Source: Heterodontus francisci
Lineage: Eukaryota
Direction of reading: 5' to 3'
Assembly: GCF_036365525.1 (NCBI RefSeq)
Contig: NC_090380.1
Span: forward strand, 72,591,757 to 72,655,756
Length of the DNA stretch: 64,000 bases
Positions within the stretch are counted from its first letter, which is position 1. The number at the start of each line of letters is the position of its first letter. The notes beneath the pieces were generated by a model. It was not told the origin of the DNA, made no database searches, and saw nothing but the letters and a program-made list of their open reading frames with translations. The position numbers were made by a program, and so were the translations under genes. Of the stretch, positions 36,601-61,065 are shown one piece after another.

Positions 36601-39600
36601 AATTCTTATGCCTCCATTCTCTGAAAAATCTCTGCCTCAGGAGCGATTCTTGTTGCCTCTTATGTTTTGGGAGATCCTGAAAGCTCAAGAAAGCTTCTAT
36701 TGCTAGACTGCCATTTCAAAACCCAAATAGACCTATTGCTACACCCTTTATTGAAAGGTCTGTGTGGTGCCTGCTGCAAATGAAGTGCCATGAATGCCTG
36801 CCCATCACAGACTGTTCATCAACCTCTCCTGGAGAGACTTCGAGTGGTATCTGATGATTCGACTCCGGGACACCTCACCGCCCCAGAAATACCCTACCAG
36901 AAAGTGACAACCTAATTATTTTATTATTCCTATGAAACAGTTGTAATCCAAAACATCCTTTTATAACCGGATAACCGTTTTTTTTTTAATGTGTGTATAT
37001 GTGTGTATATGCATGAGGGTTCAGAAGAATAAGAAGTTCGAAAGGAATCCTTTCACGTATAGAGTTATCTCATTATTGTTTAAAACTTAGTTTATGAATA
37101 AATGGTTAATTTTGTTATTGTTCAAAGAAATCTGTGCTTTATTCTGGGGGACAAATAGTGATTAATTTGGCTATTTTCCATTGGGTGGGAAACTTTACTA
37201 ATATGTTATGACCTGTGGAGTAGTGGGACTGAATTAACAGTGCATTACTCCCGCCTTAGTTGTAGCACAGGATATTGACAGAGGGAAGATGAAGAAATAG
37301 TGATATAAGTCTAAGTCAGGATGGTGTATCAATTGGAAGGGAACTTGGAGGTGATGGCGTTTCCACCAGATTATGGCTCTTGTCCTTCTCAGTAACAGGA
37401 AATGTTGTTGGAGTCACCTTGGTGAGTTACTGCAATATATCCTATGGATTGTATATACTGTATTGTGCTGGTAGTGAAAGGGATGGATTTTAAGTCCAGC
37501 AGCTGGATCAGCAATCAAATGAACTGCTTTTGGCTGGATAGTCTCGAGCATCTTGCTGCTGTTGCCACATCCATACAGGCAAGTGGTGAATATGCTATCA
37601 CATTCCTGACTTGAGCTTTGTAAATGTTATGGGGATGTGCTACTCATCACAGCAAATTGACTGTTGTGCTTGCCCGCAATACAGGAGTGACTATAATTCA
37701 AAGATAAATCATTGGCTGTAAAGGGCTTTAGGACATCCTGAGCGTATGAGGTGCCATGTAAAATACTCTTTTCTCTTCTCTTTCAAATTCACTCACCAAT
37801 GTTTTCCATGTCTGCCAATTTGATTGTAGTGGAATCAATATCTGAATTAGACTCTACATGTAGCTATTACCTGTCATGCGCCGACCTTGAGAGGACCACC
37901 TTAAGAGTTGTAAGTAAAGATTACCAGACGAAGTGATGACGCATCACACATGACCAGGCAGTTGTGGGTGGAGCCCAGCAGAGTGAGATTTATTCAGATG
38001 TGATTCATGCAGTAACTGTGAAGTTATAATAAAACCCACATTTTCTTTGGATATTACTTGCAGTCCTGTAAATCTTACAATGGTTCCTACACCAAAGGGA
38101 CAAGTAATATTACATTATCTTGTGCTGTCTTTTACATTCCCAGTTTCAATAGTTTCTGGTACAAACAAATTGAATGTTGAGGCCATATTTGCCATTTTGT
38201 TGCATGTAACTATTATTGATCATTTCTCTCTCAGCGTAATAATTTCTCAGTGGACCAGCATGCTGCATGTGGTGGCAGGCCACTTGGATCGAATCAGTCT
38301 GAGCTATATTACTCTGGATGGCTCTGTGACTCCTAAACGTCGTATGGATTTGGTGGAGGAATTTAATACTAACCCTAAAGGACCTCAGGTACCAGCTGGT
38401 TGCCATTTTGGGTTGTCTTAAGGAAAAAGAACCATAGATTCAGAATACTAAGGGAGCTTTGTTTTCTTTCCAATTTTCTTCCCTGATGATGCTAATAAGT
38501 GGTAACGTGCAGTTGTTGATATCCCTCTAGTACCTTGCAGATTTGTAATCTTTAAGTAAGGTTAGGCTAGATTTAACTTTGGTACATGTACCTTCCTTCC
38601 CCTTATCCCTGGCAAATATCTTTCTAAATACTTACCATCTAACCTCACATATGAAGAATGGATGCTTGGATCAGGTACTAGAATGCTGGTGATACCTATG
38701 TTATCATACTCAGCATAAGTCGTCATCTTTGAGAGGTGGAAAGAAAATTGGACAATAAAATTCTTAACTTTAATGCAGCCCATTCTTGAAATTCCTGATA
38801 TGTAAACCACTGTGTAAAATGTAAACATCCTGTTATGATCCCCCAGGAGACCAACAAACCAAAAGAACCCAATAAGAAAATGCTCAGTGGACAAGATTTC
38901 ACTTTTATAACTTTTAATTTAACAATCAAACCACAATCAACATGAATTAAACATGAATTATTAGTAATTCACGGTCAAGATATTACAAATTACACATTTG
39001 GTATCAGAGACGACAACCTGGATCGCAAGGATTTACTAGGTGGTCCATTGAGCAGTTATGGTACCAAAGTACAGTCCCACAGTTCTTCAAAACCCTGAAA
39101 TTCCTCAGGTAAGTCTCTAGATCCTGTCTTCCAAAATGCCGACGCAATTCCCCACTGACAGTGGTTTTGTTTTAATCTCGAACTCCACAGGTACAGTCTT
39201 CACCAAAAGAAATATGCTGTACTTCTCCAGGACTTCCTCAGTTCTCCTTTTGACAGGCTTGATGGCATGGATTCCCAGTGTAACCTTTATTTGTGCCATT
39301 CAATGACATCCATGTGTCCTGTATGGCTGGGTCTGGTTAATCAGCTCCTCTTAAAAAAAAAACTGAAACCGCTCCTGGATCAATTCTTCTCTTTCTTCAA
39401 CCTGCCTGTTAAAAAAAAACCTTTCTGCTGTCTAAATTTGGATAACACTGTCTCACTGTTTTATCTGGTTCCAACCAACCTTCGCAACCTGAAGTATTTG
39501 TTTTCAGTTTCTGTTGGGACATTCTGTTCCCAAAACATGAAAAAAATCTTTGCAAACCAGGGTTAGTGCACCTGCCAGAGCATTCGACAAGCCATTTGTT

Positions 39601-42600: not shown

Positions 42601-45600
42601 GGTGGGGGGCTCATGATCGGGCACCCTGTGCCTGCCAAGAGGGCCGCCCCCAATGCCCGAACCACACCCAACAGCACCCCACCCCATCCCCCCCGTCCCC
42701 CCAGTTGACCACCCTTACCTCGCTGGGGACCGACTGATCACCCCCTGCGAGACCCCAAAAACTTACCTTTTCCCGGGGCTGTCCTTCCACTGATTGGCCA
42801 GCAGCTCCATTAGGCGGGACTTACTGCTTCAGTGAGGTGGAAGTCCTGCCTCAGACCAGTTAAGGGCCTGGGGACCGTAAAATGCGGTCCGCAGGTCAGT
42901 CAGTGGACGGCTCCCGTCAGATGAAAGTGAAATTCCGGCCAAGGAAATGGTAATAGAGGAAGAGAATATACCTGACATTCCATGGAAACTAATAATGGCA
43001 TGAACTCACTAAAGTTAAAGTAAGCAAGAAAGCAATACCAGAAAAAGTAATGACACTAAAAACTGACCGATCCCCAGGACCTGATGATTTCCACCCCAGA
43101 GTTTTAAAAGAAGTAGGTGCGGGAATTGCAGTTGCTGTATCCATAATCTTTCAAAGCTCTTTAATTTCTGGAACTGTCCCTTTCAGATTGGAAAATTGCA
43201 AATGTAACTCCAAAATTTAAGACAAGCATCGAGAAGTAAATAAAGTAGTAGGCGAATGTCTATGCTTGTGGCTAATATGAAGACATTCAGTAAGGTTCCA
43301 CATAAGAGCCTTAGCTAAAATTAAAGCTCATGGAATTGAAGCCATTTATTGGCCTGGCTAGGAGACTAGTTAGGTGGTAGAAAAGAGAGTAGGATAATGG
43401 TATGTACTCGAATTGGAGGAAGTAAATAGTGATGTCCAATAAGGATCTGTTCTGGGGCATCAGCTATTCACAATATTTGTTAATAACTTGACTAACACCA
43501 TAAAATGCCATATATCCAAGTTTGGCGATGACATAAATATACATGACATGGTAAGTAGTGTAGACAGGAGCATAAATTTACAAAGAAACATTAATTGAGT
43601 GTGCAAAATTGTGGCAGATGGATTTCAACACAGGCAAGTGTGAGGTCATCCATTTTGGACCAAAATTGAAAAGGTCTGAGGATTTTTTAAATGGATAACA
43701 GCCTAGGAATGGTATTGATCCAAAGAGGGGGTCCATGTACTAAAATGGGTTCTGATGTAAGGTCACAGACTTGAAATGTTAGCTCTGCTTCTCTTTACAG
43801 ATGCTGCCAGACCTGCTAAGTATTCCCAGCACTTTGTTTTTATTTTGGATTTCCAGCATCTGTAGTATTTTGCTTTATTAAACTGTCAGATATGAAACAA
43901 TAATCAAAAAGGTTAATGAAATGTTAGCCTTTATATCTAGGGGAGCTAGAATATAGAGGGGAGGAGGTTTTGCTCCAGCTATTCAAAGCCCTGGTTAGAT
44001 CACATTGAGAACTGTGTACAGTTCAGGGCATCACACCTTAGGATATATTGCCCTTGGAAGAAGTGCAGTACAAATTTACCAGAATGTTACCAAGGCTCAA
44101 GGGGTTAAATTATGAGCGATTGCATACACTAGGCTTGGATTCCTGGAAAATAAAAGGTTAAGAGGAAGTTTAATTTAAGGTTTTAGGATTTTGAAAGGAA
44201 TTGATAGGGTAATGGAGAGAAACCTTTTCCACTGGTTGGGAGTCTAAGACGAGGGGAGATCAGCTTAAAATCAGAGCCAGGCCTTTCAGGGGGGAAGTTA
44301 GGAAACACATGATCACGCAAAGGGTGGCAGAATTGTGGAATTCTGTCACACAAAGCAGCAAATGCTAGAATAGTTATTTAATTATGAATTTCAGATCAAT
44401 AGATTTTTACTAGTCAAGGATATTTGGAGCCAAGGCCAGTAAATGGAGCAGGATACAGATCAACCAAGATTTCATTGCATGGCGGATTCTGCTCAAAAGG
44501 CTGAATAGCCTGTTATTGTTCCGATGTAAATCATGCTTGAAAATTAGAATACTAATTGCAACTTTTGGATCAGTTTGTGCCATAGTCATAAATCACTTTA
44601 GTATCTGCAATCTCAGTTTTTTTTTAAATGCTAATTTGAGTTCATGTACAGAAAACTGTCTGCATCAGGGTCTCAGGCCTTGTTGATCAGGACAGATAAT
44701 GTGTTTCAGGTCAGGATGATAATCTGCGTCCCTGAAAATATAGCATTCTATCTGGGTTAAAGTGTCATTGAATCAATGTCAATTTACGATAAGGTGCCAC
44801 ATAAAAGGCTATTGCACAAAATAGGAGGTCAGGGCATTGGGGGTAATGTGTTGGTGTGGATTGAGGATTGGCTAACACACAGAAGGCAGAGAGTCACGAT
44901 CGATGGGCCTTTTTCAGGTTGGAAAGCCATAACTAGTGGGGTGCCACAAGGATCGGTCCTAGAACCTCAACTATTTATTTACTATCTATATTAATGACTT
45001 GGAGGAAGGGAGGGGGTGTAGTGTATCCAAATTTGCTGACAATACAAAAATAGGTGGGAAGGCATGTTGTGATGAGGACACAAAGAATCTGCAAAGGGAT
45101 ATAGATAGGTTAAGTGAGCAGATGGTGTTCAATGTGAGAAAGTGTGAGGTAATCCACTTTGGTAGGAAGAATAAAAAGGCAGATTATTATTTAGATGGAG
45201 AAAGACTACAAAATACTGCAGTACAGAGGGATCTGGGTGTTCTTGTGCATGAAACACAAAAGATTAGCATGCAGGTGCAGCAAGTAATTAGGAAGGCAAA
45301 TGGAATTTTGGCCTTTATTGCTAGGGGGTTAGAGTTTAGAAATAGGGAAGTCTTGTTACAACTGTACAGGGTGTTGGTGAGGCCACACTTGGAGTACTGC
45401 ATACAGTTTTGGTCCCCGTATTTAAGGAAGGATATACTAGCATTGTAGGCAGTTCAGAAAAGGTTCACTTGGCTGATCCCTGGGACGAAGGAGTTGTCTT
45501 ATCAAGAACGACTAAATAGGTTAGGCCTTTATTCATTGGAGTTTAGAAGAATGAGAGGTGATCTTATTGAAACATACAAGATTCTGAGGGGGCTTGACAA

Positions 45601-46308
45601 GGTAGATGTTGAGAATATGTTTCCACTGGTGGGGGAATCTCGAACTAGGGGACATAGTTACAGAATAAGGGGTCACACATTTAAAACTGAGATGCGAAGG
45701 AATTTCTTCTCTCAGAGGGTGGTGAATCTCTGGAATTCCCTACTTCAGAGTTGTGGAGGCTAGGTCACTAAATGTATTTAAGGAGGTAGATAGATTTTTG
45801 AATTCTCGAGTCGAGGGTTATGCGGAGCAAGCCCAAAAGAGGAGTTGAGGCCTGGGACAGATCAGCCGTGATCTTATTGAATGGCGGGGCAGGCTTGACG
45901 GGCTGAACGGCCTACTCCTCCTATTTCTTATGTAATTTACATCAGTTTCAGGTGGATCTATTATTGCAGCTGAATTTGGAACTTGTTGCTTTTTCCATCT
46001 CAACAAATTGAGAATAATGCATTGCTGCAAAATGCTTAATGCAGTGAAATTTTGCAGCAAATTAGATTTCACGATAAACAGGTTATGTTGTAATCAGAAA
46101 TGGTGGTAATTTTAGTTTTAAAAACAAAACTGTTGCTATACTAAAAATTGCATTTCCCTCCAGGTTTGTGTGTGAGGGTACTATTGAGGACAAAGTCTTT
46201 GAGCTACAGGAGAAGAAAAAGGAACTAGCAAAGAAGGTGCTATCGGGAACTGGAGGATCCTTTACCAAGCTTACATTAGCTGATCTTCGGATTCTGTTTG
46301 GTGTGTGA
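510..46308 (+). CDS. TTF2: Transcription termination factor 2 (SNF2-family helicase/ATPase), last 14 coding exons (~573 aa); 5' exons lie upstream of the window
   Basis: Exons 510-623, 6091-6241, 7003-7093, 7495-7694, 7986-8139, 13621-13712, 16324-16412, 19630-19772, 20291-20461, 27268-27326, 38235-38388, 39872-39954, 41013-41087, 46164-46308. All are AG/GT bounded and phase-compatible. Motifs: ADDMGLGKT (I), CPASL (Ia), ILDEAH (II), TGTPIQN (III), SQWT (IV), [11 protein letters not shown] (V), [11 protein letters not shown] (VI). No RING insert; C-terminus [13 protein letters not shown] is TTF2-like. Confidence 0.95.
820..1152 (+). mobile_element. Old SINE, SacSINE1/DeuSINE-like, with L2-type 3' tail
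   Basis: tRNA-like head (gagtcaggaggctgtgggtttaagccccac), core ctgagggagtgctgcactgt, tail gtgaagtgctttggga...tatatgaatgcaag. Confidence 0.6.
1539..3254 (+). mobile_element. Decayed hAT DNA transposon with CGGBP1-like transposase remnants
   Basis: 8-bp TSD ATTATAAT (1531-1538 and 3255-3262); TIR ..taccaaattcac / gtgaatttggtagggcccta; [26 protein letters not shown], and [13 protein letters not shown] (hAT dimerisation motif). Confidence 0.8.
3632..5662 (-). mobile_element. CR1/HER1-type LINE fragments (two nested 3' ends plus RT)
   Basis: ORF pieces [33 protein letters not shown]; CR1 3' tails at ~3635 and ~4370. Confidence 0.85.
6091..6241 (+). CDS. TTF2: TTF2 exon ([13 protein letters not shown]...YHGP)
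   Basis: caacag|AT...AAGGT|gtgagt; phase 1 to 2. Confidence 0.93.
7003..7093 (+). CDS. TTF2: TTF2 exon ([17 protein letters not shown])
   Basis: tttcag|G...AAT|gtaagt; phase 2 to 0. Confidence 0.9.
7495..7694 (+). CDS. TTF2: TTF2 exon ([14 protein letters not shown])
   Basis: tttcag|GCT...CTCAA|gtaaga; phase 0 to 2. Confidence 0.93.
7986..8139 (+). CDS. TTF2: TTF2 exon ([14 protein letters not shown]...LLRRMK)
   Basis: gttcag|G...CTG|gtaaat; phase 2 to 0. Confidence 0.93.
9478..11402 (-). mobile_element. CR1/L2-superclade LINE, 3' part of ORF2
   Basis: 301-aa RT ORF 9542-10447 ([18 protein letters not shown]-term HHHLLKGN); ALDIKAAFD upstream; A-rich tail at ~9480. Confidence 0.85.
11433..11645 (-). 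mobile_element. CR1 3'-end fragment
   Basis: aagaacataagaaatagaagcaggagtaggcc tail; [10 protein letters not shown]. Confidence 0.7.
11988..12124. other. Assembly gap (137 N)
   Basis: Run of n. Confidence 1.
12244..12999. mobile_element. GC-rich non-autonomous TIR element (MITE), nested in a larger related element (~11660-13153)
   Basis: TIR ggccgggattttac...gtaaaagtctggcc; 3-bp flanks act/acg. Confidence 0.65.
13621..13712 (+). CDS. TTF2: TTF2 exon (VALPQK...[16 protein letters not shown])
   Basis: ttccag|GTT...TCCAG|gtatat; phase 0 to 2. Confidence 0.92.
14459..15278. mobile_element. GC-rich MITE-like element, degenerate
   Basis: Starts ggggctgcatttt; internal ggcgccatctttaaaggg and acttacc motifs typical of this family. 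Confidence 0.45.
16324..16412 (+). CDS. TTF2: TTF2 exon ([12 protein letters not shown]...DNPFNR)
   Basis: ccatag|G...AGAG|gtaaaa; phase 2 to 1. Confidence 0.9.
16615..18170 (-). mobile_element. CR1 3' fragment interrupted by a MITE
   Basis: CR1 tail at 16615; reverse-strand LVRPQLEY-like RT C-terminus resumes after 17905. Confidence 0.75.
17241..17902. mobile_element. GC-rich MITE with 3-bp TSD
   Basis: TIR gggctggaattt...aaaatccaggcc; TSD tgc at 17238-17240 and 17903-17905, inside a CR1. Confidence 0.75.
18856..19330. mobile_element. GC-rich MITE-like element
   Basis: Starts gggctggattttccc; right end degenerate. Confidence 0.45.
19630..19772 (+). CDS. TTF2: TTF2 exon ([21 protein letters not shown])
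   Basis: attcag|TA...ACG|gtaaga; phase 1 to 0. Confidence 0.92.
20291..20461 (+). CDS. TTF2: TTF2 exon ([16 protein letters not shown]...STK)
   Basis: ttacag|GCT...AAG|gtatat; phase 0 to 0. Confidence 0.92.
22939..23338 (+). mobile_element. 5'-truncated LINE 3' end (same family as 9478-11402), inserted in the CR1
   Basis: [21 protein letters not shown]...HHHLLKGN, nearly identical to the 9542-10447 ORF C-terminus. Confidence 0.85.
24604..25506. mobile_element. Solo LTR inserted in the CR1
   Basis: TG...CA ends; 4-bp TSD ATAT (24600-24603 and 25507-25510); removing it restores the CR1 sequence. Confidence 0.75.
25876..26217 (+). mobile_element. HE1-like V-SINE
   Basis: tRNA head (A box tggcgcagtgg, B box ggttcaattc), V-core tgtggagtttgcaagttctccc, CR1-derived tail ending (ctaaa)n. 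Confidence 0.85.
26345..27070 (-). mobile_element. Old L2-like LINE fragment
   Basis: Reverse strand gives degenerate PQGSIL and HxFVTSRL RT motifs. Confidence 0.5.
27268..27326 (+). CDS. TTF2: TTF2 exon ([12 protein letters not shown]...QK)
   Basis: taccag|ATC...AAAAG|gtacgt; phase 0 to 2. Confidence 0.9.
27722..33010 (-). mobile_element. Near-full-length CR1/HER1 LINE interrupted by an RTE
   Basis: ORF1 esterase-like ([15 protein letters not shown]) 32276-33003; endonuclease; RT ORFs 28837-29298 and 27899-28753 (GSVLGP, FADD); 3' tail at 27722. Confidence 0.9.
30588..31938 (-). mobile_element. RTE-clade LINE (5'-truncated)
   Basis: [29 protein letters not shown]; (GAA)n tail; 12-bp TSD CTTGCATTTTTC at 30576-30587 and 31939-31950. 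Confidence 0.9.
33535..35462 (-). mobile_element. CR1 ORF2 fragment interrupted by a solo LTR
   Basis: 198-aa ORF 33832-34428 ([31 protein letters not shown]). Confidence 0.85.
34520..35371 (-). mobile_element. Solo LTR
   Basis: TGTTACGACC...GGATCATAACA ends; 4-bp flanks ctat/gtat; terminus matches the reverse complement of the 47887-48788 LTR end. Confidence 0.7.
36120..37267 (+). mobile_element. Solo LTR inserted in an old LINE fragment (~36000-37660)
   Basis: TG...CA ends; TSD CAGG (36116-36119 and 37268-37271); internal AATAAA. Confidence 0.75.
37670..37775 (+). mobile_element. SacSINE1-like 3' tail fragment
   Basis: cattggctgtaaagggctttaggacatcctgag...ccatgtaaaatac. Confidence 0.5.
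38235..38388 (+). CDS. TTF2: TTF2 exon ([10 protein letters not shown]...LDGSV...FN)
   Basis: tctcag|C...CAG|gtacca; phase 2 to 0. Confidence 0.93.
38831..39692. mobile_element. Possible solo LTR
   Basis: TGTTATGATCC start and TGATGACA end; no clear TSD. Confidence 0.35.
39872..39954 (+). CDS. TTF2: TTF2 exon ([28 protein letters not shown])
   Basis: tcacag|GTC...CACTG|gtaaga; phase 0 to 2. Confidence 0.93.
41013..41087 (+). CDS. TTF2: TTF2 exon ([17 protein letters not shown])
   Basis: tttcag|G...CACAG|gtaact; phase 2 to 2. Confidence 0.93.
42325..42940. mobile_element. GC-rich MITE
   Basis: TIR ggccggaatttt...aaattccggcc, inserted in a CR1. Confidence 0.7.
43745..43880 (+). mobile_element. 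Short Penelope-derived element (degenerate hammerhead motif)
   Basis: ctgatgtaaggtcacagacttgaaatgtt...gatgctgccagacctgct; same family as 59850-59990. Confidence 0.65.
44788..45932 (+). mobile_element. CR1 RT C-terminal half and 3' tail
   Basis: [30 protein letters not shown]; tail ctactcctcctatttcttatg. Confidence 0.88.
46164..46308 (+). CDS. TTF2: TTF2 last coding exon ([11 protein letters not shown]...LRILFGV*)
   Basis: ctccag|G...GTG TGA; stop at 46306-46308. Confidence 0.93.
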
Positions 46309-49039: not shown

Positions 49040-49112
49040 CTGAGAAATAAAACAAGACACACTCATGCAAATATTTAATACACAAAACCATGATAATTAA
49101 TTTGCTTACCAT

Positions 49113-49207
49113 TTATTTGCAAATCTGAACACAGATCACTGCCGACAGTAACAAACTCATTCCCACAAAGATGGTGAGATAGCGTATGATGGCTGGGACA
49201 AAACCAT
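49113..49207 (-). CDS. Transmembrane/cytoplasmic exon GFVPAIIRYLTIFVGMSLLLSAVICVQICK*
   Basis: tttacag|AT phase 1; hydrophobic run with one Arg; TAA at 49115-49113, then ATG|gtaagc donor at 49110/49109. Confidence 0.85.
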
Positions 49208-52200
49208 CTGTAAATAGAGTACATAGGGTGAGATCACCCAGCTGTGATAAAAGATTGACAACCTGTTGATGCTCTCCTAAAAATACTTTTTTTAAAAAAC
49301 TGGGGCATTTACCTTAACTGGATTAATAGCTTTGTCAAAATAATGAATTTGTGTCTGTCATAGATATCTTCCCAAGTTTCAGTGGCTTCAGTCTCTTCCC
49401 GAAGTGAACTGACCATTCTTTAGTCTTGAAGTGGATCAAGCCAAAGCTTGTGAGACACGACCAGATTACAAATCATAAAGCTGTTTTATTACGGTAAGGA
49501 GAGCGTACAGAGCAACAGTGATTCCCTAATTCAAAGCATAAATCAGTTCAACTTATCTTCCCATATTAATATAAAATAACACATCAATAGGTTGTCTTAC
49601 TGACTTAAACAAGATACCTTCTTACTGCCCTCCAGTATTTCTAAACTTTCAGTCTCAGTGTAAATCCTTCCACTGTTCTGGTTAAAATCCTGACTGCCAG
49701 TGTCTCTCTGTTTTAATCGCCACCAAAAATGGTTAAAAAGGTTCAATGTGACACAGTTTGACATCTTATCGGGCAGCACAGTGGCGCAGTGGTTAGCACT
49801 GCAGCCTCACAGCTCCAGGGACCCAGGTTCGATTCCGGGTACTGCCTGTGTGGAGTTTGCAAGTTCTCCCTGTGTCTGCGTGGGTTTTCTCCGGGCGCTC
49901 CGGTTTCCACCCACAAGCCAAAAGACTTGCAGGTTGATAGGTTAATTGGCCATTATAAATTGCCCCTAGTATAGGTAGGAATATGGGATTAGTGTAGGAT
50001 TAGTATAAATGGGTGGTTGATGGTTGGCACAGACTCGCTGGGCCTGTTTCAGTGCTGTATCTCTAAACTAAACTAAACTAAACATCTAACGGGACGCTAG
50101 TCTTTGCAGGTCTTAAGCATCACAATCACCAACCAGTCAATCTGACTGTATATGATTTACTGCTCCTAAGAATCAGGTATAAGAAGATGAAAAACTTAAG
50201 ATACTGATCCAAATAAATCACTGATTTACATTTTTATGGAATAATGCTAAAAATTACATTTATCTGGCAATTCTGTATTAGCCAAAATGTTCAGCACAAC
50301 ATTGAGACATTTGAAACATTTATACATTTTTGTCATTTTAATTTAACTTCTAGATTAACAGCGTCTATCAATGTGTTGGTTCAGTTTATAGATACCAATC
50401 GCACTGCGGTACTGTATCTGTGGCTTTAAATGGAGAACCAATTTTTTTCTGTATACATAAGTCCTAGAGGGAAAAGTTTAAAGGGTCTTTATGGTTACCC
50501 ATTAATGCAGTTGTAATCCCCAAAACTGATTTGACTGACCTACACACTGATATTATATGGAATATATTTATCAACACATTACTCCAGGGCCCATTTCTCT
50601 TACTGTTTGGCTGTCTATCCAATTTTCTATTCGTTTAGTCCAGACTGCTGGCCATCTCTCTGCTCATTCCCAGTTACTGATTAGCTATCCCTGGGAGCAT
50701 ATTTCTGCCCATTTCTCCCAATGTATGCTTACCAATTTCATTATTTGTCTATCTGGTAACCAGAGTTCCATCTAAAATTTCTTTATACTGGACAGGTTAT
50801 AAACTCCTCTGGTCACTACCTTTTTTTGTCCATGTGCAATGTGCCTTTTAAAAGTCAGGACTTGTATTAGGCTGGAAATTCCTCCCAACTAACTGACAAT
50901 GTTATGAACGGCCTGTTTATTTTTAATATGAGGTGCATTCCAGATTGTTGTGTGACGATGCACCCACACATCTTTAGAAGGAGCATTGCTGGTAACTCCT
51001 CTATACATGCATCCACTTTTACTGCTAACTTGTGTCCTTATTAGCCAAAAGGTACAATATTGAAATCGTAAATATATTATCAGTTCCACATTTGCATTGT
51101 ATTCATAAACAAATGTTTTCATTATAGGTTTTGCGATGTAAAAGAAACTTAGTTTTAATTATGAGGAGTTATCCTATCTTATGAGATGTGTGACATGTTG
51201 CAGTGTAATTCAACATGTCTTTGATTAAAGTTTTTTTTTATCACATTCTAATTAATTTAAAATTAGAATAAGTCATTTTACATTGTACTCTAAATTGGCT
51301 TACAGGTAGTACTTTGGTAGCCTATGAGGTGACAGAGTTAAACGTTGATTATCATCTGGGAGGGCTTTTATCACAAGTTATAATTAATTAGATATGATGC
51401 AAGTATACCTGGGGACTGAACCTGCTCGAAATCCTATAATTGTCCTTCATACTGACTATGCAAAGCTCAGCATGAATGTTGGGAGCATTTAGATTTAAAG
51501 GGAAACGATGAAGATGGATTGGAATCTTTTTTCTGGCTATATATAAATAAACCAGGCCATGATTTTCAACTATAAATGCTCATTGCTATGATGATTAGAA
51601 TAAAACAATAGAAAATGTCCATCAGATAGTATGTTTAGCTTGTAAGTGGCTTTAAAATGTCCTATTTCTCATGTATAATTTACCGCGTTGTACTTCAGTG
51701 AGGTATGTATCAAACCCTAACTACACCCACGTGCTTGATCAAAATAAGGACTGCTTTACTCAGAATTCAAATGATAAAACTTCGGACGTTTTCATATATG
51801 CAGCGATTAGCGATCCAACTTCATATATTTTCATAGACAACATTTGCTCAACGAAATATTTGACAATATATTTCTGGTGAATAGCGACTAGAAGTACATT
51901 TTAACAAAGGCACAGTTCATTTCCGATAATTAAGATTGCTTTTAAGCAAGATTGTCTTCGGTATCTCTTTTATGTAAATATCCCAAGTATCTGGTCACTG
52001 TTAAAGATTGTCGCCCTCCGACATAACGCATTATTGTGCAGATAATTTCACTATGCTAACCCATGAATCGGATCGTAGCACCCACTTGTGTATGTCTAAT
52101 AAAACAGGTTTATCAATTTTACCTTCAGTGTGTGACCTGACTACTTGTTAAATGTTCCATACATAAATGGAAAGACACATTAGGTTTAGTATTCCACAGA

Positions 52201-54095
52201 TTGGATGTGGAGTAACTGGGGGTAGCGAACATTTATTCCCTTTCTGAACAACTTACCTTTGCTGTGAACAAAACTTTTCCTTGCTGACCTGACGACTGTA
52301 ACGTGTTGAACCTGACAGGTGACGGTGGTTCCCTGGTCCCAGTAACTGTCTGTAATCCGCAGCCGGGAGCTCAGGTTGTAAGTGCTGTCACTGTTTTCTA
52401 TCAGGGAACCCGGTTCTGTTTGATAGGAGACATCTCCCGTTACAAACCAAGACATGTTCAGATTTCTTGGGAAAAATCCCGCAGCCAAACAAGTCAGAGT
52501 CTGAATGGCAACAACTTCATTCTCGGGATCCGCAGAGAGAGATACTTCAGGTTCCGCTAAATAAACACATTAAAATAACGTAAATTATATCAAAACAAAA
52601 ATTGCTGGAAATACTCACAGGTGCGAGGGAAAGCGAAACAGAGTTAACGTTTCAGGTTAATGGCCTTTTCAGTTCTGATGGAAATTTGATACTAAATGGG
52701 GAATTACTGAATCAGTTTGACTAGATTATCAATATACAAATCACAAGATCATTCGATGATTGTATGGAGCTTTCAGTAGAGAATTGGATAGAGAACGTGA
52801 AGAGAAAAAAATTTGCAGGCTACGGGAAAAGGTAGTGGGACGAGCTGAGCTGCTGTTGTAGAGAGCTGGCACGGACACGACGGCCCGAACGGTCTCCTTC
52901 TGTGCTGTAACTATTCCATCTATGATCAGATACATAAAGTATAACACATCTACCCTAATGAAATAACTGGCCAGAATAATATCCCATGATTTTACAATAT
53001 AATTTGTTCGGGCACAAATTCACTTTGTTTTTCTTTATTTCATTGACGATATTGGTTTAAATGACAACACCTATTTCACAAAGCAGTCATGCTATTTGCA
53101 ATAAAAACAAGAAATGCTGGAACCACTCAGCAGGTCTGGCAGCATCTGTGAAAAGAGAAACAGAGTTAACGTTTCGGGTCAGTGACCCTTCTTCGCAATG
53201 CTATTTGCAATTCGTTTGCTATATAAATAACATTCCTCTGTTAGTATAGAACTGTGCAGCACAAAAGAAGGCCACTTAGCCCATATTGCTTGTGCCTTTG
53301 AAAGAGCTATTCAATTAGTCACACTCCCCTGCCTTTTTTCTCCTGCTCAAGCATTTATCCAATATCCTGTATTTGTATTAGCATTACCCAGTTTTGTCTT
53401 TTGGTTATTTTCCATCAAAACCAAGTTTTTAAAAACTATATGAAAGTACCTTCTGTTTAATAGTTATTGTGAAATGAAAGTTAAACGCTGGTTCAGTCCA
53501 GCTCCCAGTGCACTGAGCATATCAATCCAGATTAGGTGTCCGTGTGGAGCTAATTCTAGTTCCTTTGCCCCATACATTGAACTAATTCAGTTTTAGTTAA
53601 TCTAATTACCTTCGATGTTCAGTTTTGTTCCTTCTCCTGTGAAGCTTTTCCAGGGCCGAGGCTTCACTCTAAGGACCAGGCAGTGGTAAGGGTCGGAATC
53701 GTCCACAATCACCTCCCGAATGACAAGTGAACCCCGAGGCATCGATACAGACACGCGAGAGCTTTGATTGAGGAATTTCCTGGTTTCGTTGCATCCGATG
53801 CCAGGATTGTCTCTTGCCCTACACCAATAATATTTCACCGAATCCATTCGCTCCTCTCCGGGTATCAGGATGCAGTTGATCCGAGCTGTCTGTCCTCTCA
53901 GGAGGGACAGAACTGAAGGAGACTGGATCACTTCCAGACCGACAGCAGGCCCTGGGACATAAAATTACAAGAAGTAGGAACATAAAATTCAAATAATCTG
54001 AGTACAACTGGAATTACTGATAACTGGAGTCAAAGTGAAAGCTTACCTAAGACAAGGAGCCAGAGTTTGAGAACAATGTTTGTAAATGCACCCAT
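49113..54095 (-). CDS. Non-rearranging antigen-receptor-like IgSF gene (leader, VJ, C1, CP, TM), ~267 aa; VJ-C1/PRARP-like family
   Basis: Exons 54047-54095 (leader), 53610-53951 (VJ), 52257-52556 (C1), 51304-51321 (CP micro-exon), 49113-49207 (TM plus stop). All junctions are phase 1 with canonical GT/AG and the frame is open throughout. Confidence 0.88.
49771..50082 (+). mobile_element. HE1-like V-SINE in the CP-TM intron
   Basis: A/B boxes, V-core, (ctaaa)n tail; flanking acatct repeat; absent from the duplicate at ~57735. Confidence 0.88.
51304..51321 (-). CDS. Putative 18-nt connecting-peptide micro-exon, (G)YQSTT
   Basis: ctcatag|GCTACCAAAGTACTACCT|gtaagc; frame-preserving; homologous 18-mer in the duplicate. 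Confidence 0.6.
52257..52556 (-). CDS. C1-set Ig constant domain exon
   Basis: PEVSL..LTCLAAGFFPRNLNMSW..NSDSTYNLSSRL..WDQGTTVTCQVQH; 300 nt; atttag|CG and AAAG|gtaagt. Confidence 0.92.
52590..52680 (-). mobile_element. Short Penelope-derived element fragment
   Basis: tgctggaaatactca...acagagttaacgtttcaggt. Confidence 0.6.
53100..53196 (-). mobile_element. Short Penelope-derived element fragment
   Basis: tgctggaaccactcagcaggtctggcagcatctg...gttaacgtttcgggtcagtgaccc. Confidence 0.7.
53610..53951 (-). CDS. V-set Ig exon with fused J-like segment
   Basis: VIQSP..GQTARINC..YYWC..SLVIREVIVDDSDPYHC..FTGEGTKLNIE; tcccag|GG and GAAG|gtaatt. Confidence 0.92.
54047..54095 (-). CDS. Signal-peptide exon MGAFTNIVLKLWLLVL(G)
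   Basis: 49-nt exon ATG...TTAG|gtaagc followed by a 95-nt intron, as in Ig/TCR V leaders. Confidence 0.85.
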
Positions 54096-54371: not shown

Positions 54372-54721
54372 ATTTAGATTTTTTATTTTTTTAGAGACAC
54401 AGCACTGAAACAGGCCCTTTGGCCCACCGAGTCCGTGCCGACCAACAACCACCCATTTATACTAATCCTACACTAATTCCATATTCCTACCACATCCCCA
54501 CCTGTCCCTATATTTCCCTACCACCTACCTATACTAGGGGCAATTTATAATGGCCAATTTACCTATCAACCTGCAAGTCTTTGGCATGTGGGAGGAAACC
54601 GGAGCACCCGGAGAAAACCCACGCAGACACAGAGAGAACTTGCAAACTCCACACAGGCAGTACCCAGAATTGAACCCGGGTCGCTGGAGCTGTGAGGCTG
54701 CAGTGCTAACCACTATGCCGC
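54372..54721 (-). mobile_element. HE1-like V-SINE
   Basis: Reverse complement of the 25876 and 49771 SINEs. Confidence 0.88.
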
Positions 54722-54844
54722 AGTGGAGTGTGTCAATATTCTGGACCTATTCCAGCACTTTACCATATGTTTGTGTTTGAATGGTTTGGGGAGAGGTGGG
54801 GGGGGGGGGGGGGGCGGGTGATCATTGGTAGAGAGCAGGGGAAA

Positions 54845-55192: not shown

Positions 55193-58100
55193 TATATTTG
55201 ATGTATGGAGTTTCTCTACTTCAAGAATGAATTACTCAGCAACTCCAACCCAGTCTGAAGCCAGATATTGTCTACATGACTGGGAAAATGTGACCGACAT
55301 AGGGAACTGAAATTATTTGTTTGGTTCTTACAGCCTGGCAAAAAAGGTGTTTTTAAACAAGCGGCTACTTGACTTTGATCAGTTGTAGGAAAACAACTCC
55401 CAATTAAAATGACGATTTGCTATATCAAAGTATATATGATTTCAGTTTGGTCAGAACATTGCTTTCCTAACTTGGTGCTTGTTATTTTTATAGACTGAAT
55501 GTAAGATGGAAAATTCATCATTAAAGTAAATACATTTGATTACTTTCTGCAAAGTACTTTGGAAAAGTTTTTGTGATTTGGTTTCTTTCAATAACTGATC
55601 CATTTCCCACTTGCAACATCTTTTAAGATGCAGAGCAATTGTTTAACCACGAATGGTTTTAACATTGAGAAAGATTTGGTGAATCATATAATGAGTTAAT
55701 GTCCTACTGTCTCTGAAGTGTATGAATTCGACTCCAGCTCAGATTGCAACGGAAACCCTTTTTGCTAGTGATTGTTGGTGCATTGCCCAAAACCGCCAAC
55801 AATTCAACACAAATTGGCACTAAATTTCAGTCTTGTTGGATAGCGCAGATGCCAGGTTCAAGGCACATTGTTGGAGCAAAGCAGAGTAATGTTTATTCTG
55901 CAACTCCAACCTTGGAATGATTCAGTATGACATGGGGAGAGCAAAAACAAACAAGAGAAACCAAAACAAGCAGAAGCAATCGCCAAAATGTAATTTAAGT
56001 CAAAATAATTGTGATTTGATCCAACCTCCGTTGTGTGGAGGTCCATGTGAGAAATGAGAGCTTGATTTATATTCTACTTAAAAATGAAATGTGTTATTGT
56101 GGTTCACTGCCTTTGGCTACAAGGACTGAAATAAAGTTATGTTACTCTAGGTTATACCTATGATACAATCTTAGAATGTAATTATTCAGGTGTAATCCAG
56201 AGAGATTCCAACCGTTGAAAGTCTGTAATTTGTTTCAATTAGTGTTTTTCAAAGTGTTTTGTGGAGGATCCCTTCCAAATCGTGCAAACACTCCACAGGA
56301 CAATCAATCTGACTTGGGAAAAAAAGTTACCCCATCACAAAGGAAATCAATGTTGTCCTGGTAGAAAATATTTCTAGTAGTTTAAAGCAAAATGGACATA
56401 AGCCAACAATTATAGAAAGCTGATGAGTTTGTGCCAGCCCAGTTTAAAAACATGGGTTGAGCATCATGTAATAGGTTGAATTAGTTGAAGTACAGATTTT
56501 TTATTTGCTGATGAGATTTTCTTTAACTGTTGGCATTATGTAACCTGTTGAGATCTCTTTTATTGATTCTACAATATATGCATTTCTTGCAAGTTGACAG
56601 TTAATGTGTTTCTGGACAAAAAATATTTTACCTGTTTGCCATGTATACAGTTTCTAAATAAATCTTTTGGAATAGCTCTTTTATTTAATGGATTGCAAAG
56701 CGAAGCCTAAAACATTCATTTTTATGAAATAAGTAAATGAGCATTATAAATAATTATCATCAAAACTGGAACCAGTAACAAAAAGCGATTCATGTCATTA
56801 CTTATACAGATCTCCCGATTACCTTTCAGAAGGACAGGAGCTGGTAATGCCGCGAGAACTTTTGAGAAATAAAAGTAGAATCATCCAAATATTTATCACA
56901 CAAAAGCATGCTAGATAATCGCATTTCTTGCCATTTACTTGCGAATCTGAACACCGATCACTGCCATCAGTAACAAACTCAATCCCACAAAGATGGTGAG
57001 GTAGCGTATGATTACCGACAGGAATCTGTAAATGGAGTAAGTACATAGGGTGAGTTCACCCGGCTCTGATAAAAGATTGATAACGCGTTAACCTATTCTT
57101 CTGCTTCTTTAATTGAACTGAAGGATTTACTTTAACTGGGCTAATAACTTTGTCAAAATAACAAATTCAGGTCTGTCATAAATATCTTCCTGAGTTTCAG
57201 TGGCTTTAGTCTCTTCCCTAAGTGATCGGAGCATCTTTCAATGGAATTAACTCACGCTACCTTATATTTATTGTATAATAGCATAACTCAGGGTGTAACA
57301 ATAACATCCACTCCAGATCTGAATTTGATATTTATTTTACGGGTGCTTCTTTAATCTTCTCGAAGTGGATCGCGCGCCCAAACACTTATTCAGACAAGAC
57401 CACGTACGAATTACAAGGCTGCTTTGTTACAGTAACGAGACCATGCATGACAACAGTTGTGCTTTGATGCACATAATTCAATCAGATCAAATTACCTTCC
57501 CATATTAATATAAAATAACTCACCATGCTTCCCCCATCGACAGATTATCTTTTGCCTTAAACAAGATTCCTTCTCACTGCGCCCCCCCAGTATTTCTAAT
57601 CCCTGTCTGTGAAAACCCTTACACCAGTCTGTTTAAACATTTAACCGACTGCCAGTGTCTCTGTCTCTATTTTAATCTCCCTTTGTTCGGAGATCAAAAA
57701 TGGTCAATAAGTTTCCCAATGTGACACACTCCAACATCTAATAAGCCACTCTAGTCTTTGCAGGTCTTCAGTGTCGCAATCGTCAAGCGCAGTTGCACAC
57801 GTCAATCTGCATTAAGATATGTGATTTACTGCTCCTATGAATCAGGTGTAAGAAGCTGAAAAACTTAAGATACTTACCAAAATCATTTAAGCTGATTTAC
57901 ATAATATGATGAATTGTGTTTTAAATTATATTAATGTCAATTCTGTCTTAACCAAAAACACGTGGTTAAGCATATTACTGCACATGATTATTACTTAAGC
58001 AGGCTTTTGATAAGCTAACCTTGCCATTTAATTTGTGTCTTATTATGGATTAACAACATGTCAAAATGTTGGTTCAGTTTTTAGATACTGCGCAGTTTAA

Positions 58101-59850
58101 GTGTCTGAACCTGTGACTTTAAATGGAGAACAAATTGTTTTTCATGTACATGGGTCTTAAATCGAAAGTAAAATCAACAGCTCATATAATACATATGGTT
58201 AACCTTTAATACAGTTAATACATCCCCAGCATATACACCCTTCTGAGCCAGCAGGACTTGAGATGGCTTGGCCATGTGAGCCGCATGGAAGATGGCAGGA
58301 TCCGCAAGGACACATTGTACAGCGAGCTCGTCACTGGTATCAGACCCACCAGCCGTCCATTTCTCCGCTTTAAAGACGTCTGCAAACGCGACATGAAGTT
58401 CTGTGACATTGACCACAAGTCGTGGGAGATAGTTGCCAATGATCGCCAGAGCTGGCGGACAGCCATAAAAGCGGGGCTAAGGAGTGGTGAGTCGAAGAAA
58501 TTTAGCAGTTGGCAGGAAAAAATACAGAAGTGCAAGGAGAGAGCCAACTGTGTAACAGCCCCGACAACCAATTTTATCTGCAGTGCCTGTGGAAGAGTCT
58601 GTCACTCTAGAATTGGCCTTTATAGCCACTCCAGGTACTGCTCCACAAACCACTGACCACCTCTAGGCGTTTACCCATTGTCTCTCGAGACAAGGAGGCC
58701 AAAGAAAGAGAGAACCCCCAACCGTTAATGATGCTGCTTAAACTAGTTGACCTACACATGAACATTGCATGGAATATATTCCAGACCCCATTTCTGTTAC
58801 CGTGTGGTTGCCTATCCAACTCTCCATCCCCTTAGTTTTTTGTCCAGACTGCTGACCGTCTCTCTACTCAGTCCCACTTACTGCTTTATTTTATTAGTTC
58901 TGTCATTTGTACTTATGAGATACAACCATTTTCATATATATGTAAAACAAAACCTATGTAAAAGAAACTTGCTTTTAATAATAAGGAATTATCCTATTTT
59001 ATCGTGTGCAATATGCTTCAGCCCAATTTAATTAAGTAACATATAGATCTAAAAACTATTATATTAATATTCTAATTTAATTAGTTTAAAACTAGAATAT
59101 CATTTTACATTGTACTCTAAATTGACTTATCGGTAGTAGTTTGGCAGTAAATAAGGTGACTGAACTAAACGTTGATTATTAGTTGGGAGGACTTTTGTGA
59201 TAAGTTATGATTGATATGATAAAAATGATATAATTATCCTTTATATGGAATATGTAAAACTTTGCAGTAATATATTTTATGAATGCTATTAGTTAAGAGC
59301 AGTTAGATCTAAAAATGATGCAGATAGATTAGAATCATTTGTTCTCTTCTGGCTATAATAAATAAGCCAGGGTATAATTTTCAACCATAAATGTTCTCAG
59401 TGTTATAATTAGAGTAAAACAATAGACTATGTCCATCAAACAGTTTGTTTATCAGTTGTAAGCGACAGTTTAAAATGTTCTGTTCCACACTGTACCTTAA
59501 TACTGATATGTAGTGAGGTACATATCAAACACTAACTACACACACATTGCTTATCAACGTAACAACAGTTCTGCATCTAGAATTCAGATGGCATAACCTG
59601 GGGGTTTTCACAAATATGCAGCATTTAGTGATCCAATTTAATCTTTTCATAGGTCCAGTCAAATACTTCGGGGTGCAATGTTATCTACATATATTTCTAA
59701 TGAATAGCGACCAGAAGTACATTTTTACAAAGGCACAGTTAATTTCCGACAAAAAAACTCAGATTGATTTTAAGTAAGATTGTCATCTGTACTGACCTAT
59801 ATCTTTTATATAAATACCCCGAGAATCTGCTCGCTAATAGGATTGTCACT
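55193..59850 (-). pseudogene. Diverged tandem duplicate of the 3' half of the VJ-C1 gene (micro-exon, TM exon, 3' flank); possibly a pseudogene or variant paralog
   Basis: Colinear similarity to ~46490-52015. TM exon 56932-57025 (FLSVIIRYLTIFVGLSLLLMAVIGVQIRK*) with a 4-nt deletion near the acceptor and a GC donor. Micro-exon 59131-59148 has both splice sites mutated. Confidence 0.8.
58220..58712 (+). mobile_element. RTE LINE 3' fragment, present only in the duplicate
   Basis: RWLGHVSRMEDGRI...[21 protein letters not shown]; same family as 30588-31938. Confidence 0.88.
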
Positions 59851-61065
59851 AAAATAAAAGCAAAATACTGCGGATGCTGGAAATCTGAAATAAAAATGGA
59901 CAGTGCTGGAAATACTCAGCAGGTCTGGCAGCATCTGTGGAGAGAGAAGCAGAGTTAACGTTTCAGGTCAGTGACCCTTCATCAGAATTGGCAAAGGTTA
60001 GAAACGTAATAGGTTTTATGCAAGTAAAGCGGGGCTGGTGGTGGGGGTGAGGGAGAGAACAAAAGGGAAGGTGTGAGATAGGCAGAGGGCAGGAGAGATT
60101 AACTGACAAGGAGATCATAGGGCAAAGGCAAACAGAGTGTGTTAATGGTGTGGTGAAAGACAAACATTTGTGCAGAGAGAGTGTTAATGACAGAATAATG
60201 AACAGGCCTAGTCAAAAGCACAAACATGAAAACCCAGTATAAGGCAGGTACATGGTTAAAAAAAGATGAAAGAACAAACTAAAATAAAATAATAAAAGGG
60301 CCAATCATGCTCTGAAATTATTGAACACAAAGTTCACCCTGGAAGGCTATAGAGTGCCTAATCAGATGATGAAGTGCTGTTCCTTGAGCTTGCATTGATG
60401 TTCACTGGAACACTGTAGCAAGCCCAGGCCAAAGATGTGGGCATGAGAGCAGGAGGGTGTGTTGAAATGGCAAGCGACCAGAAGTTTGGGGTCATGTTTT
60501 TGGACTGAGCAGAGGTATTCCACAAAGCGGTCACCCAATCTGCGTTTGGTCTCCCCAGTGTAGAGGCGGCCGCATTGTGAGCAGCGAATTCAGTATTCTA
60601 AATTGAAAGAAGTACAAGTAAATTGTTGCTTCACCTGAAAGGAGTACTTGGGACCTTGGATGATGAGGAGAGGAGGTAAAAGGGCAGGTATTACACCATC
60701 TGCGATTGCATGGGAAGGTGCCATAGGAAGTGAACGAGGTATCGGGTAATGGAGAAATGGACCAGGGTGTCGCGGAGGGAATGATACCTTCTGAATGCTG
60801 ACGGGGGGTGGGGGGAGATGCGTTTGGTGGTGGCATCACATTGGAGGTGGCAGAAATGTCAGTGGATGACCTTTTGGATGTGGAGGCTGGTGGGGTGGAA
60901 AATGAGGACAAGGGGAACCCTGTTGCAGTTCTGGGAGGGAGGGGAAGGGGTGATGGCAGAAGTGCAGGAAATAGGTTGGACACAGTTGATGGCCCTGTCA
61001 ACCACAGTGAGGGGGAATTCTCAGTTGAAGAAAAAAGACATATCAGAAATGCTGTTGTGGACGGT
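59850..61065 (-). mobile_element. Penelope-like retroelement 3' part (GIY-YIG endonuclease and terminal region)
   Basis: PCNRRWCNTC..FTCTS..IRCSQCGRLYTGETKRRL (frameshifted); terminal region matches the short dispersed elements. Confidence 0.8.
59953..59989 (-). ncRNA. Minimal type I hammerhead ribozyme motif
   Basis: aatt CUGAUGA-A-GGGUC-ACU-GACCU-GAAA-CGUU aacu on the - strand. Confidence 0.55.

Follow-up and report, generated by a model that had tools for sequence, protein, structure and literature searches.

Genes in which one exon holds a variable (V) domain already joined to its J strand, and which link it to a C1-set constant domain, are sought as living kin of the gene that was split by the RAG transposon (PMC12227049). 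A gene of this layout lies on the minus strand of a 64,000-nt stretch of the genome of the shark Heterodontus francisci (the window; all coordinates are window positions), and raises the question of whether it is such a relic, a derivative of rearranging immunoglobulin (Ig) or T-cell receptor (TCR) genes, or a receptor of another kind. A first-pass annotation of the window took it for a cartilaginous-fish member of a non-rearranging VJ-C1 lineage, with the layout proposed for the pre-RAG antigen-receptor ancestor. As a lone survivor of that type the gene is not borne out, its family being elasmobranch-wide and already annotated; judged from its sequence features, it is probably a SIRPβ-like activating member, with an arginine (Arg) in its transmembrane (TM) segment and a short tail, of a paired activating/inhibitory VJ-C1 receptor family of cartilaginous fish.

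The gene has four core exons, for a split leader, a V domain, a C1 domain, and a TM segment with its tail (Table 1), all of them open in minus-strand translation, with canonical AG/GT borders and every junction in phase 1. The leader exon holds the start codon and most of the signal peptide, ends in phase 1, and agrees at 16 of 17 residues with the leader of P0036, an annotated Heterodontus protein discussed below. The TM helix (PAIIRYLTIFVGMSLLLSAVICV) has a single Arg close to its outer end and runs into a four-residue tail, QICK, just as first described. The first-pass count of five phase-1 exons and about 267 amino acids (aa) stands for the four core exons, whereas the fifth, an 18-nt hinge micro-exon in the 3049-nt intron between C1 and TM, is plausible from its splice signals: of the 88 in-frame AG..GT candidates in that intron, it alone combines a good polypyrimidine tract with a GTRAG donor. 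The models of the Arg-TM homologues of Pristis (P0026), Mobula (P0038) and Hemitrygon (P0040) lack it: in these, C1 is fused straight to the TM exon through an Asp codon, and the G/AT junction that these use is also present in the window gene, so that the predicted protein has 261 or 267 aa. With or without the hinge, the stalk contains no Cys. An AATAAA at 49112-49117 overlaps the stop codon (AAA TAA ATG gtaagc), and the mRNA may end just past it or be spliced at the GT that follows the stop codon.

The V-set and C1-set identities of the two extracellular domains are secure. Searches and structure predictions were all run exon by exon, with single exons or database proteins as queries, and Pfam recognizes a V-set domain in the V exon (1.2e-7) and a C1-set domain in the C1 exon (3.7e-17), a CD80-like C2-set scoring just 1e-4 in the latter. 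The V exon has Cys-B, Trp-C and the motif DSDPYHC, followed without interruption by a J-like G strand, GEGTKLNIE, which upholds the initial description of a V domain fused in-frame to a J-type strand within one exon. Domains of the C1-set are marked by (F/Y)(F/Y/H)P at the BC loop, 13 residues from Cys-B to Trp-C, and xVxH after Cys-F (Hatherley et al., 2009; PMC2785349), and the C1 exon has all three: FFP, a spacing of exactly 13 residues (LAAGFFPRNLNMS), and C-QVQH. In AlphaFold2 models, the V exon (predicted local distance difference test score, pLDDT, 82.9) resembles the V-set folds of shark VNAR, TCR Vα, VL and SIRPα domain 1, and the C1 exon (pLDDT 86.5) resembles IgG CH3, major histocompatibility complex (MHC) class II β2, IgNAR C1 and TCR Cβ; Pfam score, hallmarks and fold thus agree with the single C1-set domain that had been proposed. 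A heptamer-spacer-nonamer scan for recombination signal sequences (RSSs) found no heptamer/nonamer pair in or beside the V exon, again as had been stated, and the RSS-like matches between 48 and 55.5 kb are loose, occur at background density, and in no case abut that exon. With its J strand inside the V exon and no RSS, this is a non-rearranging, germline VJ-C1-TM gene of a cartilaginous fish with a fixed third complementarity-determining region (CDR3), and on this point the first-pass annotation was right. B7-H4 also has a V-C layout, with a 2-aa tail, and occupies the same chromosomal neighborhood in human. A B7-H4-type reading was rejected in view of the J-like strand, the true C1-set domain with its far better score, and the occurrence in the family of twins bearing immunoreceptor tyrosine-based inhibitory motifs (ITIMs).

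When the V exon was searched with HMMER against 1.84 billion representative proteins, only four of the 24 matches were better than 1e-20, and all four are elasmobranch V-C1 receptors of 290-436 residues, with NCBI names that include "signal-regulatory protein beta-1-like", SHPS-1-like (that is, SIRPα-like) and "uncharacterized". A follow-up search from one of these added members from Mobula, Heptranchias, Hemiscyllium, Stegostoma, Heterodontus francisci itself and Hemitrygon; the C1 part of P0036 retrieved family members only and added Cetorhinus, and a search with the Arg-TM end of P0026 gave no matches. Other automatic NCBI names within the family are "Ig kappa light chain-like", "TCR beta chain-like" and "Ig heavy chain Mem5-like". 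The window gene is a member of this elasmobranch-wide family, which is already present in the NCBI annotation under such names, and of which no published description was found in the literature accessible to search. Most members have the V-C1 layout; a duplicated C1 occurs in Hypanus and Mobula birostris, these two-C1 members being limited to some rays and the product of recent duplication. Members of the activating type, namely P0026 (260 aa), P0038, P0040 and the window gene, share the TM motif P-x-I-x-R...VG-x-SLLL...VI and a short tail. Those of the inhibitory type pair a TM like …LLSLILIVPFCLWII… with one to four ITIM-like motifs in the tail (LHYASV, TEYAVL, VxYSTV, TxYASL), and occur in at least eight elasmobranchs beyond Heterodontus and Pristis.

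These searches bear on whether the gene might derive, by germline joining, from a rearranging antigen-receptor gene of sharks, either a lambda-type Ig light chain (IgL) or a TCR. Sharks do possess germline-joined IgL genes (PMC12227049), some family members are named after Ig kappa or TCR beta chains, and the best single-sequence PDB matches of the V exon alone are VNAR, Ig lambda and TCR Vα. Those matches reach only E ~1e-3, at roughly 22-27% identity, however, and no Ig or TCR chain appears among the named matches (20 of the 24) in the 1.84 billion proteins; moreover, family members carry ITIM tails or a TM Arg and no light-chain C terminus, have no interchain Cys in the stalk, and share their architecture with proteins of chimaera and caecilian. 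Such an origin is extremely unlikely, and the gap between these ~1e-3 matches and the family matches below 1e-20 indicates that the gene does not belong inside the Ig and TCR clades. SIRP domain 1 is absent from the 60 best PDB matches of the V exon alone, and for the C1 exon alone IgG CH3, UrIg2 C1 and SIRPγ score alike.

The case for a paired receptor comes from Heterodontus itself. The annotated proteins P0036 and P0037 are 98% identical to the window exons in V and 95% in C1, but end differently, with a TM of another, uncharged kind and a long tail that contains LHYASV and SEYAVL (P0036 being a TM-less isoform; NCBI models give several isoforms for such genes). Given this near-identity and the several modeled isoforms, the Arg-TM exon might be no more than an alternative 3′ end of the inhibitory gene, with one gene giving two isoforms and the residue differences from P0036 being allelic. 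In a tblastn search with P0037, however, the 64-kb window shows no TM or tail exon of the ITIM form, and none lies in the 8 kb that follow the Arg-TM exon downstream, as far as the SNF2 open reading frame (ORF) at 38.0-38.4 kb; the corresponding two forms of Pristis have different leaders and distant accession numbers. A single gene with two ends is very unlikely, and, as the window lacks the TM and tail exons of P0037, the inhibitory form is a separate gene: Heterodontus has two genes with near-equal ectodomains and opposite signaling ends.

Such paired forms, an ITIM tail in one and a basic TM with a short tail in the other on near-identical ectodomains, are present in both Heterodontus and Pristis. 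Maximum-likelihood trees, one for V and one for C1, were built from family members without Ig, TCR or SIRP outgroups. They place the window gene beside the inhibitory form of Heterodontus (support 98/97 in the V tree, 98/98 in the C1 tree), and the V tree joins the activating and inhibitory forms of Pristis (97/92), whose C1 domains are identical. Ectodomains therefore group by species, and the Arg-TM exon type is common to sharks and rays, from which it follows that the TM types predate the shark-ray split. This within-species likeness of ectodomains, apparently kept up by gene conversion or repeated duplication, is a classic signature of paired receptors under concerted evolution. In sequencing runs X3 and X4, from a closely related organism, two changes in C1 (N to D and K to G) produce the residues of P0036, a hint of gene conversion.

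For expression, adaptor use, ligand and cell type, the guide is solely analogy with SIRPα/β, KIR, LILR and NKp30/NKp46. On that analogy, both twins would recognize one common ligand by means of the fixed CDR loops in their V domains; SH2 phosphatases would be recruited by the ITIMs of the inhibitory form, and the window receptor, unable to signal alone, would pair its TM Arg with an Asp-bearing adaptor carrying an immunoreceptor tyrosine-based activation motif (ITAM) and so deliver an activating signal. Partners of FcRγ and CD3ζ typically have their Arg close to the outer leaflet, and the predicted adaptor is of this type, with DAP12 less likely. The first-pass notion of a TCR-like innate receptor is to this extent half right: the membrane anchor is of the activating type, but the likeness to a TCR fits less well than an activating SIRPβ-type twin, because the stalk lacks a Cys for a TCR-type interchain bond.

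Several observations weigh against reading the gene as a working activating receptor of SIRPβ type. A dead partial copy lies 2.5 kb upstream of it. In runs X3 and X4, a 27-nt in-frame gap in the V exon (53674-53701) removes DSDPYHCLV, including the F-strand Cys as the aligner placed it, and the C1 exon has at least 10 nt differences, which cause at least seven residue changes against at least one synonymous change. The protein of the window gene is not among the database matches, and may be unannotated or have been judged non-coding. The seven sequencing runs that cover the locus show introns evenly covered at 3-10x and no exon-exon joints, which makes them genomic DNA; every run that holds the locus being of this kind, the splicing of the exons rests on sequence signals. 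Lastly, the similarity to SIRP, taken domain by domain, is no stronger than that to UrIg2 or to Ig constant domains.

All but the last of these points would suit a recent copy of the inhibitory receptor gene that is non-functional or dying, still open by chance within a birth-and-death cluster and without a role of its own, to which the decayed copy next door, the V gap with the mostly non-synonymous C1 changes in the related organism, and the want of an annotated protein or of anything other than genomic reads all lend some weight. The decayed copy is evidence of birth-and-death turnover. It derives from the segment 48806-52012, which takes in the 3′ flank and the region of the TM and hinge exons and ends before the C1 exon is reached; its TM pseudo-exon (56938-57024) has lost 4 nt after the acceptor, and with them the reading frame, and its hinge relic (59131-59148) has lost both splice sites. 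That relic keeps a Cys codon not found in the live gene. A tblastn search revealed no further V or C1 exon upstream of the copy within the window, and the idea that it might be a second intact gene, a tandem paralogue, was rejected, only the 3′ part having been duplicated and then decayed. Against a dying gene stand the four open core exons with canonical splice sites, next to a 3′ copy that at 69-80% identity has already lost frame and splice sites, and the Arg-TM exon itself, whose shared motif has been kept from sharks to rays, a conservation that requires long-term selection on activating forms. A dying duplicate is on this balance unlikely, and an activating member of a receptor pair probable. 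The fast, mostly non-synonymous change and the turnover of copies fit pathogen-driven selection on such a pair, but they fit decay as well.

With what known system does the family compare best? A family profile built from twelve members and searched against the PDB gave UrIg2 (9dmx) the highest total, with 132 bits summed over its three C domains. The UrIg2 match spans only the last V strands and C1 (63 bits), the remainder coming from the extra C domains. Human SIRPα is the sole protein aligned in one co-linear stretch over V-C1 (73.4 bits, profile positions 23-219), and in C1 the two score similarly. As in SIRP, the V-set domain has a J-like GxGTxLxV strand in the same exon and is followed directly by a C1-set domain, and both share the V-C1 junction …GTELxV-AKP… and the motif GFxPRD-I/L-x-W. 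The inhibitory shark members carry up to four ITIM-like tyrosines, and SIRPα also has four; the activating ones, like those of SIRP, combine a near-identical ectodomain with a basic residue in the TM and a very short tail. There are differences as well. The window gene has a single C1 exon between V and TM, against V-C1-C1 in SIRP; its TM residue is an Arg near the outer leaflet, whereas that of SIRPβ1 is a Lys; and it adjoins an SNF2 helicase gene, whereas the human SIRP cluster is at 20p13 and is not known to lie in such a neighborhood. A 2026 survey placed the origin of the SIRP family in Tetrapoda (PMC13262535), and SIRPs have been held to descend from, or stand close to, the antigen-receptor precursor (Hatherley et al., 2009; PMC2785349).

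Beyond the cartilaginous fish, a caecilian protein, P0009, is the closest relative: its alignment with the shark inhibitory form covers V, C1, TM and four tyrosine motifs from one end to the other, at 27% identity (E 5e-34). A V-C1 protein of the chimaera Callorhinchus is 30% identical to the shark form (E 2e-32), and a lizard "SIRP beta-2" matches in V only (3e-6). The PRARP genes reportedly have a non-rearranging VJ exon, a C1 domain in fish, amphibian and reptile members, a TM and an ITIM tail, and are said to be absent from mammals; they have reportedly been found from bony fish to birds and not in cartilaginous fish. We know of no Arg-TM activating partner for PRARP. Caecilian P0009 and the shark inhibitory members show this same layout of VJ, C1, TM and ITIM tail, and by analogy a link between the family and PRARP is plausible, with the window gene as a possible shark counterpart. 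The PRARP study itself (Fu et al., 2019, J Immunol) is cited in PMC10751288.

UrIg and UrIg2 resemble the window family in being elasmobranch and in having a single-exon VJ, a split leader and C1-set domains. They carry at least three C domains (UrIg2 of nurse shark has nine), dimerize in an Fc-like manner, and are linked to the MHC or the AgRC (PMC12227049), in contrast to the one C1 and the ITIM or Arg-TM signaling ends of the window family; no Ig, TCR or MHC gene was found in the 64-kb window. NKp30 (NCR3) shares with the window gene a non-rearranging VJ domain, an activating design, and the same predicted class of adaptor, and it too has a TM Arg and a short tail, but it has no C1 domain and no ITIM twin, and is MHC-linked. 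NCR3-like multi-VJ proteins of sharks (the P0012 group) match the V exon only at 3.7e-5. In the catshark Scyliorhinus torazame they form a cluster (P0012 and P0046-P0052) of proteins that carry two or three VJ domains in tandem, with the canonical FGxGTxLxV, and a TM with hardly any tail; they bear the name "Ig kappa light chain-like", and are possibly another, NCR3-like family of non-rearranging VJ receptors.

Sharks were already known to have UrIg, UrIg2 and NCR3, and to these the window locus adds a SIRP-/PRARP-like V-C1 family with inhibitory and activating members. The activating gene at this locus, whose protein was not among the annotated proteins that the searches returned, could be added to the Heterodontus genome annotation. 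It is a tentative and rather doubtful step further to regard the family as the cartilaginous-fish orthologue of the tetrapod SIRP/PRARP lineage, situated in a 1p13-type MHC paralogous region if the SNF2 neighbor is TTF2, a placement that we take from the human map and that presumes this unconfirmed name. If the orthology were true, the V-C1 paired-receptor design would be as old as jawed vertebrates, against the tetrapod date for SIRP (PMC13262535), and the map position could add a data point to the proto-MHC/antigen-receptor model. If the 1p13 position were true as well, a VJ-C1 inhibitory/activating pair would date to the base of jawed vertebrates, in a paralogon different from those of Ig/TCR, UrIg and NKp30; the family would then be a further surviving relic of the pre-RAG VJ-C1 gene, and would suggest that the antigen-receptor ancestor was a paired innate receptor.

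Table 1. Exons of the VJ-C1 receptor gene and other features of the window (window positions)
Feature	Position	Strand	Details
Exon 1, leader	54095..54047	-	49 nt; ATG at 54095; donor GTAAGC; 16 codons + 1 nt
Exon 2, V	53951..53610	-	342 nt; acceptor ...tcccag; donor GTAATT; end of leader and whole V-set domain
Exon 3, C1-set	52556..52257	-	300 nt; acceptor ...tatttag; donor GTAAGT
Candidate hinge micro-exon	51321..51304	-	18 nt; would add G-YQSTT-Y; unconfirmed, possibly alternative
TM/tail, last coding exon	49207..49113	-	95 nt including TAA; acceptor ...tttacag; short stalk, TM helix, tail
Decayed tandem copy of 3′ part (intron 3 to 3′ flank)	56624..59847	-	blastn self-comparison, 69-80% identity
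SNF2-family helicase exons	6021-8253 and 38047-38421	+	Pfam SNF2-rel_dom in three ORFs (6.0-8.3 kb)
Reverse transcriptase/LINE-like long ORFs	9542-10447, 27899-29298, 30755-32069, 33832-34428	-	
Reverse transcriptase/LINE-like long ORF	44776-45763	+	

The sole neighboring gene in the window had been named TTF2. That an SNF2-domain gene lies there is supported by the Pfam matches of its plus-strand exons, but the name is unconfirmed, a protein-atlas search naming just an SNF2-related domain and a PDB comparison yielding nothing closer than generic SNF2 ATPases; the ORF at 38 kb looks like the C-terminal part of a helicase and has no Pfam hit. Human TTF2 has PTGFRN and CD101 as neighbors. A "PTGFRN-like" protein of Heterodontus, P0010, is matched by the V exon (53611-53949), weakly and over several domains (3.4e-6), and an old link between the family and EWI-type V domains is possible. 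ORFs resembling long interspersed nuclear elements (LINEs) fill the introns and 3′ flank of the SNF2 gene, and the region is thus mostly transposon debris; a run of 137 N at 11988-12124 is an assembly gap or masked. Two short interspersed repeats also lie in the introns of the receptor gene. One, a short interspersed nuclear element (SINE) with a tRNA-like head (GGTTCGATTCC box), occupies 49777-50056 in the C1-TM intron, with copies at 54401-54725 (inverted) and 25877-26221, and its summed contig depth is ~10^5-10^6 in all four whole-genome shotgun (WGS) runs, against 3-10x in the flanks. The other, at 53094-53194 in the V-C1 intron, has copies at 59883-59983 and 43761-43844 and likewise a very high WGS contig depth.

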